From: Macrostomum lignano
Lineage: Eukaryota
DNA: 64,000 bases
NCBI GenBank assembly: GCA_002269645.1
Contig: NIVC01003274.1
Coordinates: 113,590 to 177,589 of the forward strand
Direction of reading: 5' to 3'
Shown: positions 919 to 62,216 of the stretch, in pieces
Layout of the letters: each line of letters opens with the position of its first letter
Numbering within the stretch: the stretch's first letter is position 1
Program-made: the position numbers and the translations under genes
The notes under the pieces: model-generated
The model's input: only the letters and a program-made list of their open reading frames with translations
The model's database searches: none
What the model was told of the DNA's origin: nothing

Positions 919-3900
919 AACTTCGAATTCCATTTTCTGTTGGTCGGTCTACTGGTATCGGCATTGCAGTGAGTAGTGCGAATTTCATCAAGTTTGTTCT
1001 CGGAAAGATACAGATAGACAGACAGACAGACAGACAGACAGACAGACAGACAGACAGACAGACAGTCAGACAGACAGACAGACAGACAGACAGTCAGACA
1101 GTCAGACAGACAGACAGACAGACAGACAGTCAGACAGTCAGACAGACAGACAGACAGACAGACAGACAGACAGACAGACAGACAGGCAGACAGACAGACA
1201 GACAGACAGACGGACAGAAAGACAGACAGACAGACAGACAGACAGACAGACAGACAGACAGGCACTAAGACAGACAGACACTAAGACAGACAGACAGACA
1301 GACAGACAGACAGACAGATAGACAGACAGAGAGACAGAGAGACAGACAGACAGACAGACAGACAGACAGACAGACAGACAGACAGACAGACAGACAGACA
1401 GACAGACAGACAGACAGACAGACAGATATACAGACAGACAGACAGACAGACAGACAGACAGACACTAAGACAGACAGACAGACAGACAGACAGGCAGGCA
1501 GGCAGACAGCCAGACAGACAGACAGACAGACAGAGAGATAGACAGACACTAAGACAGACAGACCCTACCAAAGCTGCAATAATTTGACCTCAAAATTGAA
1601 CAAAACTTCAATCAGAATCGAAGCCGCCAATCACTACTGCGTGAACCAGCTGACGCTAAAAATCAGTCTGGACGATTTCTATCACCGAGACGAGATTTTG
1701 ATTCCGCAACTGCCGCACGAGACTGGGGTCAGTCAGGTGCGGCATCGCAGGTGCAGGTGGATTGTAAGCTTCAACACCGGCAGCAAATGCACGCAGCTGG
1801 TACTGGCTGGGTTGCCAGCTCAGGGAAACTCCAGTTTCTGGTCGACTGACAGCCGTTTAAGATTCACCTCGATGTCGAATGTCGACACGACCGTCTTAGC
1901 TGGAATATTCCAGGTCGTCCCGTTAGAGAGCAAGTACGTTACCTGTAGTCAGCGCTTTCCGCTTTATGATTTCGCCCAACACAAGTGAAATGGGAAGTTT
2001 GCATAAAGACCCTCTACGGGGAGGCGGCTTCTCCTGCCCTGCGTCCTGCCCTGTGCTCTGTGCTGATTGGCTGCGGCCAGCCCGTCTGTGATACGAGGGC
2101 TGCGTCCTGCCCCATGCGGGGTTCTGATTGGCTGGCCCTTTGCGCTGTTGGCGAGCTTCGCCGATGGGGCACCTGCCGCCCCCCTCTCATTGTAAGGGTT
2201 TTTCTTTATTATTTAGTACTTTTTTTCGCTTCCTGGTGGTTCTTGGTGCCCTGGCGACTAATCATTCACGGTAGCTGACTTTGGGGGTCAGGTAAACCGC
2301 CTAATTTTCATGCAAAATTTAATTTACATATGCGAATGTATTTGTATAAAAAAACATATTTTTGTATAATAAGTAAACTGTTTGTAGTAGAAAAGCAGGT
2401 GCTCTAAGCTTTAAATCTAACTTCTTGGCTACACACCGCTTGCAGCAAAATCTTTCTGGTGGAGGCCAGCTGGGATCCGCGGACTGATGGCCAAAACGCG
2501 GCAAACTTGAGATTTCTGCTGCCACTTCCCAGCATCTGCAGCCGCGACATGCTGAGCTACCGGAACAGCTGCTTTGCCGTTGGCTCACTTCAGCAGAGCT
2601 TGACAGATGCGCTGTCCAGCATCAGGGGTGACGCTCAACTAGCCAGCTTCACCAGTTGGTCCGAGATAGAGGAGTTCATTGCATCCAGTGAGTGGTTTTC
2701 ACATGTAGATAGGTAGATCGATAGATAGGTAGATAGATAGATAGATAGATAGATAGATAGATAGATAGATAGATAGATAGATAGATAGATAGATAGATAG
2801 ATAGATAGATAGATAGATAGATAGGTAGATAGATAGATAGATAGATAGATAGATAGATAGATAGATAGATAGATAGATAGATAGATAGATAGATAGATAG
2901 ATAGATAGATAGATAGATAGATAGATAGATAGATAGATAGATAGATAGATAGATAGATAGATAGATAGATAGATAGATAGATAGATAGATAGATAGATAG
3001 ATAGATAGATAGATAGATAGATAGATAGATAGATAGATAGATAGATAGATAGATAGATAGATAGATAGATAGATAGATAGATAGATAGATAGATAGATAG
3101 ATAGATAGATAGATAGGTAGATAGATAGATAGATAGATAGATAGATAGATAGATAGATAGATAGATAGATAGATAGATAGATAGATAGATAGATAGATAG
3201 ATAGATAGATAGATAGATAGATAGATAGATAGATAGATAGATAGATAGATAGATAGATAGATAGATAGATAGATAGATAGATAGATAGATAGATAGATAG
3301 ATAGATAGATAGATAGATAGATAGATAGATAGACAGATAGATAGATAGATAGATAGATAGATAGATAGATAGATAGGTGGATAGATAGATAGATAGATAG
3401 ATAGGTGGATAGATAGATAGGTAGATAGATAGATAGATAGATAGACAGATAGATAGATAGATAGATAGATAGATAGATAGATAGATAGATAGATAGATAG
3501 ATAGGTGGATGGATAGATAGGTAGATAGATAGATAGGTGGATAGATAGATAGGTAGATAGATAGATAGATAGACAGATAGATAGATAGATAGATAGATAG
3601 ATAGATAGATAGATAGATAGATAGATAGATAGATAGATAGATAGATAGATAGATAGATAGATAGATAGATAGATAGATAGATAGATAGATAGATAGATAG
3701 ATAGATAGATAGATAGATAGATAGATAGATAGATAGATAGATAGATAGATAGATAGATAGATAGATAGATAGATAGATAGATAGATAGATAGTTTCAAAC
3801 TTGCTTTTCTCAGATGAAAGCGGTAATTTCCGGTGCATTCGATGCTTCCCTATGAATTTCAGACAAAGCCAGAGTGCATGAATTTCCATACAGGCAGCCG

Positions 3901-4825
3901 CTGAGCTTTGACCAGCCGGTTCGTCTTGGTATTTTTCGTACCGCCTCCAATGACGGCTTGCTGTCCATCGCTAGGACTCCATCGGGCTGTGAATTGCAGC
4001 CTGCGTCTGTGTGAGTCCAATTTAGCTCTGGTGGCTCTCGAGCATGGAAGACTTTGGTAGAAGGACTCCACATACGAATGCATCAGCGATAAAGAAATTT
4101 CCTGGTTTTTAGCAGAGCAAGCATGTATTTGGTTTGTTGGATAGGACTAAGTGACTACACTGGGGAGATATGAACTCATGAAAAATATGCTGGATGGCGG
4201 AAAGTTGATAACTTGAAACTCTAGACAGAGAGGTATTGTGAGCTAGTGTTAAAAATAGAATTATTGGCTTCCAGTGAAATTTGCACGGCTTGCGAGTCCA
4301 AAAGTCCTTCTGCTTGTGTTGTCCATGCTCTTAACAATTATCTTTATAGTAAGTCTCCAAATAGCTGACCCTCTTTCATACAAAAAGTCACATCAACATT
4401 GCAGTAAGATCGCGAATGCCTCTGGCGGCAACTGTGTTTCGTTGAGAGTCGACTCAAACGGACCTGTTATTGCCTTTGTTAACTGCAACATCCCGATGCT
4501 GTCGCTAGTCAGCTTCCCAGAGACTCATTCCGGTCTCAGCCAGTTGGACTGCAATATATCAGGCAGATTGTCTGACTTGTTCTCCGCAAATGAGGCTGTG
4601 AAACAGGTGAAAGCGGATGCTTCAATGAAGTTGCAGGGTGACGAAGACGATCGTGTGCCACCAGGAGGATCAAGTTTCGAGCTCAATGAAGCTATGAGAG
4701 GGAGTGAAAATCAACCTTCAGCCAGCAATCAGAAGGCTCCCTTTGCCATACCGGTCATCGCGGCAATACTCCAATACTCTTTGTTTTTACTCTGTTTTTA
4801 CTTTACACAACTTTTTACTTTCTGA
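919..4825 (+). CDS. Family A copy A1: CUB-like + C-type-lectin-like surface protein ending in a hydrophobic C-terminus (no cytoplasmic tail); start codon not located
   Basis: Phase-compatible exons 919-968 ([13 protein letters not shown]), 1616-1933 ([17 protein letters not shown]), 2446-2687 ([22 protein letters not shown]), 3863-4010 ([17 protein letters not shown]) and 4405-4825 ([20 protein letters not shown]). Same exon plan and intron phases as the other copies. Confidence 0.8.
1011..1563. repeat. (CAGA)n microsatellite, ~550 bp, in an A1 intron
   Basis: Near-perfect GACA/CAGA array with occasional GACAGTCA, GGCA and CACTAA variants. Confidence 0.97.
2706..3793. repeat. (GATA)n microsatellite, ~1.09 kb, in an A1 intron
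   Basis: Long GATA array with rare GGTA/GACA/GGTG variants; it is the source of the spurious LSIY ORFs. Confidence 0.98.
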
Positions 4826-61400: not shown

Positions 61401-62216
61401 AAATAGGTGATTTAGCTGTCTCAAGAGCTAAGTGATGAGGATTGTAGCCATTGGGAAGGGCGAGGGAGGATTGATTGACTTAGCTGTTTCTGACCACATC
61501 ATGTACGAACTACGAGCGTATCAAAATATATGAAACCTAATGCGAAAATAATTGTTCATATCTCATGGGGAAATTCCAGACAATGCAAAGCTGTACGAGT
61601 TCCCCTACAGGCGGCCTCTGAGCCTGGGCCAGCCGGTCCGTCTCGGCATGTTCCTGAACGCAACCGATGTCAAAGTGCTGTCCTTAGTCAGAACTGATAC
61701 CGGCTGCCAGCTGCTACCTGTAGCTGACTTTGATGAATTCAGGTGAGATTCAAACTCAAGTCAAGTAAATTTGATTGATGAATTCAATTGTAATAAAGTC
61801 CTAGTGGATGACTTTTAAGAGTGACTGGCAGAGTGAAAGGCCCGTGTCTGTCTCTGAGAGTGTCCGCGTCAAGCAGAGCGGAGGTCGAGCTCGTCAACTG
61901 CAGCAGCCCGATGCTGTCGCTGCTGAGCTTCCCGGAGACTGCCAGTTCATTGCTGTGCTTTGAGCAGTGCAACATTAGCGACTCTGTGATCAATCAACTG
62001 ATAGAGTTTGAGATGTCGACTCCTCAGTACGCATCTGAGTACTCAATGAATGCTCTGAATTGGAGCACCAGCGCTAATGACACAGTGGCATATTTTGATG
62101 GCGACTCAGCGCTTGGTGTTCACTTTCGATATCTTCTCTTCATCCTAATGGGAGTGAGCTGCATTAGCATGACTTTATGGCTACTATCTAAATTGCAGCG
62201 AAACAGTCTTTTTTAG
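55455..62216 (+). CDS. Family A copy A11; one intron expanded by nested transposons; signal exon not located
   Basis: Exons 55455-55802, 55901-56145, 61580-61742 and 61820-62216 (TM YLLFILMGVSCISMTLWLL, short tail ending NSLF). Phases are compatible across the 5.4-kb intron. Confidence 0.8.
56240..56780. mobile_element. Foldback (near-palindromic) non-autonomous element, interrupted at its right end by an LTR element
   Basis: CACTCGAAATCTATGGAGAAAG..TACACTACGGAGATAGGAAGT (56253-56320) is the reverse complement of 56702-56772. The pairing continues inward to a hairpin centred near 56490. Confidence 0.8.
56781..61362 (+). mobile_element. Full-length but defective Ty3/gypsy LTR retrotransposon (Mag-like)
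   Basis: LTRs at 56781-56932 and 61204-61362 (TG..CA, several substitutions and indels). TSD GCATC at 56776-56780 and 61363-61367. PBS-like TGGCATCGCAAGCAGG at 56933 and PPT GAAAGGGGAGA at 61193-61203. Confidence 0.95.
56992..60983 (+). pseudogene. Disrupted gag-pol of the second gypsy element
   Basis: Two CCHC knuckles (CTACGKGRHQRSEC, CFNCGCIGHFGSMC), MPDTGS protease, VVDALKGYHQV RT, TDASRLKGLG RNase H and WSDSG integrase. Stops at 58859, 59488 and 60543, and frameshifts near 57285, 59030 and 60075. Confidence 0.88.

Follow-up and report, generated by a model that had tools for sequence, protein, structure and literature searches.

Lineage-specific expansions of C-type-lectin-like domains (CTLDs) are thought to give many invertebrates recognition diversity, and to our knowledge those of flatworms have barely been described. 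The nematode clec expansions, among them C. elegans CLEC-4 and CLEC-41 as well as CLEC-42, are lineage-specific and clustered and combine a CTLD with CUB; their CTLDs mostly lack the classical sugar motifs and their function, as in the present case, is largely inferred (PMC8051790). In the vertebrate NK complex (CD69, NKR-P1, Ly49, CLEC2, NKG2), the CTLDs have no calcium/sugar sites, their genes form tandem clusters that include pseudogenes, and their signalling ends vary. In neuropilins, NETO1/2 and DCBLD2, a CUB-type beta-sandwich stands at the N-terminus of a type I receptor that crosses the membrane once. Features of all these systems recur in the 64,000-nt stretch of Macrostomum lignano DNA analysed here (the window), and we consider it probable (roughly 60%) that it holds a tandem, Macrostomum-restricted CUB-CTLD array whose proteins form a panel of cell-surface binding receptors on one scaffold.

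The array extends over positions 919-62216 of the window and comprises exactly 12 copies, 11 on the + strand and one inverted, as found by a motif scan, tblastn with a spliced model and a six-frame HMM scan (per-exon E-values of 1e-16 to 1e-45). These searches bore out the count given in an earlier note on this DNA, which had described 11 forward copies and an inverted remnant, and they revealed no additional copy in the gap at 5-22.7 kb. At least four further tandem copies are present on a second M. lignano contig. The single exon plan proposed previously was recovered as well, with the signal exon first, the exon reading GPCLSL..MLSLLSFPE-stalk-TM-tail last, and GT-AG splice sites and intron phases 2-2-1-2 kept wherever a copy has the exon. 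Retroelements were found within and between copies.

About six of the 12 copies are clearly intact. According to the six-frame HMM and splice models, c1 (919-4825, +) has an intact ORF with exons at 919-968 (signal, no ATG), 1616-1933 (CUB-like), 2446-2687, 3863-4010 and 4405-4825, and its introns bear (GACA)n and (GATA)n arrays. Copy c4 (27834-29885, +), which has a near-identical database counterpart in P0014, is intact and consists of exons at 27834 to ~27890 (signal), 27979-28305, 28687-28928, 29050-29212 and 29312-29885. Also intact are c6 (33589-35988, +), with exons at 33589-33686 (signal), 34492-34812, 34926-35173, 35263-35425 and 35514-35988 and an N-terminus identical to that of P0019, and c11 (50339-52822, +), with exons at 50339-50400 (signal), 50996-51307, 51385-51626, 51716-51878 and 52252-52822. 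The ectodomain of c7 (37312 to ~40270, +) is intact; its exons lie at 37312-37361 (signal, no ATG), 37497-37811, 37890-38131, 38218-38377 and 38508-39010, followed by a tail exon at 39101-39393 and probably by more tail exons at ~39906-40270, and P0004 is 95% identical to c7 across the tail. Finally, c12 (54217-62216, +) has an open frame over exons at 54217-54278 (signal), 55455-55802, 55904-56145, 61580-61742 and 61820-62216. The last two blocks of the earlier note (~55.4-56.1 kb and 61.6-62.2 kb) proved to be this single gene, separated by a 5.4 kb intron (56145-61580) with a decayed retroelement inside, visible as retroelement ORF fragments.

Defects were detected in the other half of the array (c2, c3, c5, c8, c9 and c10). 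The reading frame of c2 (22596-24141, +; exons 22596-22684 (signal with ATG), 22761-23066, 23296-23537, 23613-23778 and 23856-24141) breaks off within a T8 run close to 24106, and the TM segment resumes in the +1 frame, to ~24290. In c3 (25366-27398, +; exons 25366-25445 (signal), E3 at ~25927-26244, 26325-26572, 26659-26821 and 26897-27398), an in-frame TAA interrupts E3 at 26168-26170, where the database relatives P0024/P0027 have V. Copy c5 (31122-32462, +) retains only a degenerate E3, a CUB remnant at 31122-31304 that has lost its Cys, followed by exons at 31399-31649, 31722-31884 and 31958-32462; a search for its signal exon found none, and the related database protein P0015 begins at MQSGKW. 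The 5' end of c8 (42265-43206, +) is truncated, with E2-E5 missing, E6 running from 42265 and going out of frame at an A6 run close to 42505, plus a LIM-gene-like tail exon at 42919-43206. The inverted copy, c9 (45980-46480, -), is a c6-like remnant in which E3 is joined to a disrupted E6, without E4-E5. In c10 (47527-49370, +; exons 47527-47579 (signal, without ATG), E3 starting at 47702, 48103-48344, 48424-48583 and 48725-49370), an A8 run close to 47905 disrupts the frame. Since the frameshifts of c2, c8 and c10 each lie inside a homopolymer run, they could be long-read assembly errors and may not reflect gene death. Thus, of the stopped, frameshifted, truncated and inverted copies that had been reported beside intact ones, the stop (c3), the truncation and the inversion stand, and the three frameshifts may be artefacts. 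As a practical warning, homopolymer indels of this assembly can mimic pseudogenes.

For the three first exons without an ATG (c1, c7 and c10), which have AG acceptors at 918, 37311 and 47526, an ATG-only micro-exon located upstream was considered and rejected, as the c7 candidate (37166-37168) has no conserved counterpart in either c10 or c1. An AUG supplied by a spliced leader (SL) is therefore preferred, and some of the genes may be expressed via SL trans-splicing, the spliced leader providing the start codon. No SL RNA gene was found in the window.

The spliced models contain an N-terminal signal peptide and one C-terminal TM helix, which would make the family proteins type I membrane proteins, and they also show numerous N-x-S/T sites. 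It is on topology that the NK-complex analogy drawn previously fails, because the receptors of that complex are type II. Moreover, unlike the flatworm family, they have no CUB, keep the C1-C4 disulfide and signal via ITIMs or charged TM residues, neither of which was seen here. The tails are unrelated between copies, and a motif scan of them detected no ITIM, ITAM, NPxY, YxxPhi or other known sorting/signalling motif and only one weak dileucine-like site, in c7. Three C-terminal S/T-x-V/L endings were dismissed as signals, being too short to carry meaning.

The second domain is predicted to adopt a very divergent, atypical C-type-lectin-like fold; both the sequence profile and AF2/Foldseek structure prediction agree with the CTLD assignment made in the earlier note. 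AF2 models were made on the database proteins P0009 (~90% identical to c1) and P0002 (88% identical to c7). The model of the CTLD region, which is that of a database protein and not of the window's own spliced product, has a pLDDT of 84.8 and a pTM of 0.83 and displays the CTLD element order beta1, alpha1, alpha2, beta2, long loop, beta3-beta5. When it was submitted to Foldseek, the best 50 PDB matches were all CTLDs (TM up to 0.69), and 153 matches were obtained at E ≤ 1e-3; the CTLD matches include NKR-P1B, Ly49G and CD69. Family profile A4 gave 51 matches against PDB sequences, all of them CTLDs, with CD69 best (5.8e-6) and DC-SIGNR at 5e-5, and the NK complex provides the best matches by both sequence profile and fold. 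The deeper A4 profile was needed for this result: CD69 matches of the earlier A1 profile were only marginal, phmmer with c7 against the PDB gave no match, and Pfam Lectin_C was not matched even at E ≤ 10 by c7 or by 12 members of alignment A1.

In the profile alignment, the C0 and C0' positions align with CD69 cysteines, and invariant Cys residues stand at the expected C2 (GPCLSL) and C3 (DCSS) positions. The C1 position aligns to I/V and the beta5 'SFPE' is without Cys, so that the predicted CTLD is one without the canonical C1-C4 disulfide. None of the EPN, QPD or WND calcium/sugar motifs occurs in any copy in alignments A1 and A3; the loop before beta3 reads TGRxKGPC or similar, and beta4 reads EF(G/D/V)(D/N)C. 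A variable CTLD loop occupies columns 251-260 of A1, where identity is 0.20 as against 0.5-0.95 in the flanks.

The N-terminal domain was modelled, again on a database protein, as a beta-sandwich with a pLDDT of ~80. Its best Foldseek matches are CUB domains (Neto2, 9.5e-5; neuropilin-2 a1, TM 0.59), other CUB fold matches being meteorin, C1r and TSG-6, and the neuropilin/NETO/DCBLD2 group is at the top of its fold matches. The C-terminal beta-sandwiches of clostridial enterotoxins score only slightly below CUB. The CUB-like label of the earlier note thus holds by predicted fold but not by sequence: no member examined (c7 and 12 members of A1) matched Pfam CUB, the A3 profile found no CUB among PDB sequences, and the alignments show conservation of the first CUB cysteine pair (NHYC ... 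CRW) but of no second pair. At sequence level, support comes solely from UniRef, where more than 12 members bear the automatically assigned name 'CUB domain-containing protein'. We regard the first domain as a probable beta-sandwich closest to CUB, which is a weaker call than the CTLD, made on fold alone. The flatworm domain, with only its first cysteine pair kept, differs from the CUB domains of neuropilins, NETO1/2 and DCBLD2; the latter are combined with discoidin, LDLa or MAM and not with a CTLD, and those receptors are conserved single-copy genes.

The mean amino-acid identity among copies is 36% in the CUB exon, 33% in the tail and 54-62% in the three CTLD exons, in agreement with the earlier statement that the N-terminal exon and the tails diverge strongly. 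Ks among copies ranges from 0.04 to saturated, and crude, whole-exon Ka/Ks values are 0.31-0.43. All exons are under purifying selection and the array is old. Because Ka/Ks is ~0.3-0.4 in every exon, the whole-exon averages give no sign of positive or diversifying selection; averages of this kind neither show nor exclude site-specific positive selection. The comparison of c7 with c10 gave a Ks of 0.04 in E4 and 0.48 in the tail. Such uneven Ks along the genes suggests gene conversion, and E4 appears to have been homogenised between some copies. A birth-and-death family, as postulated before, fits the Ks range and the stopped, truncated and inverted copies, with the caveat of the three homopolymer frameshifts.

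Two database searches returned 8 and 24 relatives, all from M. lignano. An exhaustive HMM search of a library of 1.84 billion representative proteins gave 42 matches, and those whose source was checked were all from M. lignano, bar two exceptions, of which one is a genuine CTLD of vertebrate type (P0057, E = 1.5e-5) and the other a bacterial repeat protein; the unchecked ones that were read are fused family models. No family member was found outside M. lignano, and the family is species-restricted. Pfam scans and the profile search revealed no sequence relation between the nematode clec proteins and the flatworm family beyond the domain superfamily. The nematode proteins named above are secreted and found by standard domain models, whereas the flatworm ones are predicted type I proteins that stay below Pfam thresholds and have the CUB N-terminal to a single CTLD. 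Members carry database names that are either hypothetical proteins or erratic automatic labels, and no description of the family or its gene IDs was found in the literature searched. It is a real, so far undescribed Macrostomum receptor family.

The array grew through successive tandem duplications spread over a long period, and some of its copies are dead or truncated. The CTLD scaffold is the conserved part, and the CUB, the CTLD loop just before beta3, the stalk and the tail are the variable ones. If the array encodes a panel of surface binding receptors, ligand specificity would reside chiefly in the variable CUB domain and CTLD loop; a protein or some other non-classical ligand is more likely than a sugar bound through calcium, and the differing tails could lead to differing trafficking or signalling outputs. 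A rival reading, put forward in the earlier note, is an innate immune pattern-recognition locus, whose receptors would bind microbes, trigger defence and diversify under pathogen pressure; we consider it rather unlikely. In its fold the predicted CTLD is akin to those of mincle, dectin-2, DC-SIGN and NK receptors, and the family expanded in tandem with pseudogenes, but likeness of fold says nothing about the ligand, the EPN/QPD or WND sugar-binding residues are missing, neither ITIM nor ITAM is present outside the TM segments, and Ka/Ks is low everywhere. CUB domains commonly mediate protein-protein binding. This property, together with protein ligands being favoured by a CTLD devoid of sugar-binding residues, the confinement to one species and the fast turnover of copies and tails, would also suit conspecific recognition or adhesion in a reciprocally mating hermaphrodite (mating, sperm or egg interaction, tissue-specific adhesion); the sequence holds nothing pointing to reproduction, however, and we consider this unlikely.

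Even less likely is a role in endocytosis or cargo uptake by the phagocytic cells of the gut, like the role of cubilin (CUB) or that of the mannose receptor (CTLD). A type I protein with a short tail that unites CUB and CTLD would accord with such a role, but the cytoplasmic tails have no YxxPhi or NPxY, offer a single weak dileucine-like site (c7) and are unrelated between copies. The least probable explanation, to which we give very little credence, is a mostly decaying or artefactual array of haplotype/assembly duplicates or functionless pseudogenes. M. lignano is a hidden polyploid with difficult assemblies (PMC10468722), half of the copies have defects, and retroelements are present inside and between them. 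Haplotype or assembly duplication was nevertheless rejected, as the divergence between copies (Ks from 0.04 to saturation) is too large; Ka/Ks and the conserved splice sites also speak against decay, a similar array is found on an independent contig, and the three homopolymer indels, if errors, mean more intact copies and not fewer.

Extending the surface-receptor reading, it is conceivable, though speculative, that Macrostomum possesses a surface-recognition system of its own, a family specific to the species or genus whose several tandem arrays encode dozens of type I CUB-CTLD receptors, in which a conserved, gene-converted CTLD scaffold without C1-C4 would present variable CUB and loop surfaces and carry exon-shuffled tails for non-self (microbial) or mate recognition. 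The family escapes standard domain annotation and adds a putative CTLD subtype without the C1-C4 disulfide. M. lignano is tractable by RNAi and transgenesis, and the CUB-CTLD family is a concrete candidate set in this animal for studies of its immunity, its gut biology or its reproduction.

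The sequence of the window is eukaryotic and contains GT-AG introns as well as long microsatellites and retroelements; all protein relatives retrieved for it come from Macrostomum lignano, a free-living flatworm. The tandem cluster claimed in the earlier note proved to be real and correctly described: a six-frame motif scan, tblastn with the best copy, spliced by hand, as query and an HMM scan run on every stop-to-stop piece concordantly returned 12 family copies between 919 and 62216 (c1 to c12 in window order; E-values of 1e-16 to 1e-45 per exon), 11 on the + strand and one an inverted remnant, and none of these scans found a family copy in the gap at 5-22.7 kb. 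When exons were rebuilt requiring AG/GT sites, correct phase and an open frame, the copies displayed a common plan of a signal exon, then E3, which is CUB-like, and then E4, E5 and E6, which jointly encode a second domain, with E6 running on through the stalk, TM helix and tail; the intron phases were 2-2-1-2, as had been proposed. The last two blocks of the earlier note constitute the single gene c12, whose 5.4-kb E4-E5 intron contains decayed retroelement ORFs (putative, fragmented RT, RNase H and integrase ORFs, 57182-61174, + strand).

The second domain was identified as C-type-lectin-like (a CTLD) by profile and by modelling. A Pfam search of the family proteins and a plain sequence search of the PDB gave no match, and a profile of the 12 ectodomains yielded only marginal PDB matches, to CTLDs (CD69 at 0.03). 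A deeper profile, A4, which includes distant paralogues, retrieved 51 PDB sequences, all CTLDs (among them CD69 at 5.8e-6, DC-SIGNR at 5e-5 and DC-SIGN at 1e-4), in alignments spanning C0 ... C0'Y ... alpha1 ... LA(S/V)(F/I), and an exhaustive profile search of 1.84 billion representatives found one genuine vertebrate-type CTLD at E = 1.5e-5. Structure modelling was done on P0002, a database protein sharing 88% identity with c7, from an alignment that combined database paralogues with the window's exon translations. This model (pLDDT 84.8, pTM 0.83) shows strands and helices in the canonical CTLD order, after which comes a stalk helix; Foldseek returned 153 PDB matches at E <= 1e-3, of which the best 50 were all CTLDs, among them mincle, snake-venom lectins, LOX-1, dectin-2, NKR-P1B, CD69 and Ly49G, with TM-scores up to 0.69. 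The predicted CTLD fold is thus solid.

In the family alignment the long-form C0-C0' pair is invariant, as are the cysteines in positions C2 and C3. The C1-C4 bridge is predicted to be absent, since Ile/Val stands at the canonical C1 position and there is no cysteine in strand beta5, which reads SFPE; two further invariant cysteines (SGC, AHCSG) may substitute for it. Because neither EPN/QPD nor WND occurs in any copy in the alignments, the domain is regarded as a lectin-like fold that is not predicted to be a calcium-dependent lectin. E6 also contains an internal acceptor (ctctctcag|AGTGACC; ~38545 in c7, ~48762 in c10 and equivalents), which is used in the database models P0001 and P0011; its use, which deletes 13 residues (the conserved GPCLSLR strand with its cysteine among them), reflects either alternative splicing or an annotation error.

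The first domain is probably a CUB domain, as judged from its modelled fold. The whole-ectodomain model, built on P0009 (a database relative ~90% identical to c1), was weaker overall (pLDDT 65; N-terminal domain ~80). The best structural matches of its N-terminal domain were the CUB domains of Neto2, neuropilins, meteorin, C1r and TSG-6 (E 1e-4 to 1e-3, TM up to 0.59), with Clostridial enterotoxin beta-sandwiches ranking close behind; only the first cysteine pair is kept, and neither the family profile against PDB sequences nor Pfam found CUB at the sequence level. Further support comes only from UniRef, which automatically names more than a dozen members "CUB domain-containing protein"; it calls other members (within P0003-P0056) Vitellogenin, PilZ, Exostosin, TcfD, WIF, BRCT, PAZ, GAF or ZP "domain-containing protein"; these automatic names are unreliable for the M. 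lignano proteome, and only the CUB name recurs. The fold assignments made from the sequence were therefore largely right, the CTLD by both profile and model and the CUB domain as a probable one, by fold.

The proteins are predicted to be type I, because the spliced models have an N-terminal signal peptide and a C-terminal TM helix. The cytoplasmic tails are mutually unrelated between copies, and a motif scan of the copies found no ITIM, ITAM or NPxY in them. The tail exon of c7 (39101-39393) and c8 (42919-43206) shares 84% identity with an exon internal to LIM-domain protein genes at other sites of the genome (P0006-P0008) and appears to have been captured into the receptor tail. The first coding exons of c1 (919-968), c7 (37312-37361) and c10 (47527-47579), all on the + strand, encode a hydrophobic signal sequence without an ATG and start immediately 3' of a good AG acceptor. 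Since the spliced leader of M. lignano terminates in ...TTGCATG (PMC8629364), their start codon could be supplied by trans-splicing; the N-terminus of P0009, M+NFQRFF, fits such a start. The gene spacing of 0.4-1.4 kb and the database model P0001, which fuses c10, c11 and c12, would fit operon-like transcription.

The frames of c1, c4, c6, c7, c11 and c12 are open. Among the copies reported as stopped, frameshifted, truncated or inverted, the stop, truncations and inversion were borne out: E3 of c3 is interrupted by TAA at 26168-26170, where database relatives have valine; of E3, c5 retains just the second half, which is degenerate and has lost the cysteine; c8 is reduced to E6 and one tail exon; and the inverted c9 (45980-46480) is c6-like and lacks E4 and E5. 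The frameshifts in c2, c8 and c10, however, may be assembly errors and not gene death, because they are one-base length changes in T8, A6 and A8 runs, respectively (~24106, ~42505, ~47905), all observed single-base frameshifts fall in homopolymer runs, single-base differences in CCCC and GG runs (~39940, ~40105) also separate the c7 tail from P0004, its database counterpart at 95% identity, and M. lignano is, according to PMC10468722, a hidden polyploid whose assembly proved difficult. The pattern suggests that, in GCA_002269645.1, leftover indel errors from long reads mimic pseudogenes.

Pairwise identity averaged 36% in the CUB exon, 55%, 54% and 62% in the three CTLD exons and 33% in the stalk, TM and tail. 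The per-domain dN/dS estimate proposed in the earlier note gave median Ka/Ks values of 0.31-0.43 for every part of the gene, as whole-exon averages over saturated data that are compatible with both the presence and the absence of site-specific positive selection. Ks between copies ranged from 0.04 to saturation and was very uneven within single pairs (c7 and c10: E4 0.04, tail 0.48; c7 and c11: E4 0.17, E3 0.90), which suggests that, besides duplication, the conserved exon E4 underwent gene conversion. The least conserved CTLD stretch is the loop immediately before beta3 (identity 0.20, versus 0.5-0.95 around it). In classical CTLDs, ligands are bound by the loop region before beta3.

Other elements lie between and within the copies. 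A second, unrelated duplicated gene family occupies 5500-16500; its segments 5714-5955 and 13281-13522 are 97% identical, with a 39-nt minisatellite after each (5955-7095, 13521-13898). Its exons correspond to P0041 and P0058, large membrane proteins in which no Pfam domain was found, and in another assembly its gene model is fused to c2. Between this family and c2 lies an LTR retrotransposon (16598-20990, - strand) that looks like a recent insertion: its 212-nt LTRs share 99% identity, and its gag (19644-20717, -) and pol (16859-19564, -; RT, RNase H, integrase) frames are open. Putative retroelement ORFs were also seen between c8 and c9 (44052-44888, -; reverse-transcriptase-like YADD motif) and after c12 (62975-64000, +; two long ORFs, one with an RNase-H-like motif). 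Arrays of (GACA)n and (GATA)n, of great length, fill the introns of c1 (~1010-1560, ~2700-3790). The 28-nt satellite ctactgacactgccacccttgatacagg lies upstream of both c7 and c8 (~36600-36900, ~42000-42200) and was therefore duplicated along with the gene unit.

The suggested search for homologs and copy number revealed relatives in M. lignano and a further array on a second contig of GCA_002269645.1 (four or more tandem copies in 35 kb). In the exhaustive search the family profile matched 42 representative clusters (50% identity), the non-family exceptions being the vertebrate-type CTLD and a bacterial repeat protein; all source-checked family matches were from M. lignano, and the remaining ones inspected were fused family models. 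The family is large, multi-locus and, among public proteins, restricted to M. lignano, the sole Macrostomum species represented in the libraries. No description was found in the literature searched; the family is undescribed and has been missed by standard annotation.

The analyses demonstrate the architecture, fold, topology, copy structure and selection regime of the family. By architecture, the nematode clec genes are nearest, as both combine CTLD and CUB; by CTLD type and genomic behaviour, the vertebrate NK-complex receptors are. However, the latter are type II, lack CUB and signal through ITIM or adaptors, whereas the flatworm proteins are predicted to be type I and CUB-like, without ITIM. 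The family falls under neither definition, and in sequence it is related to neither beyond the superfamily. Among immunity, mate or gamete recognition and phagocytic-gut uptake, a role in immunity ranks first, at a probability of about one in four; this interpretation is an analogy and not a finding. The proteins would act as surface binding receptors on a common CTLD scaffold, the variable CUB domain and the loop before beta3 determining specificity and the divergent tails determining outputs, and their ligand would more likely be a protein or another non-classical target than a calcium-bound sugar.
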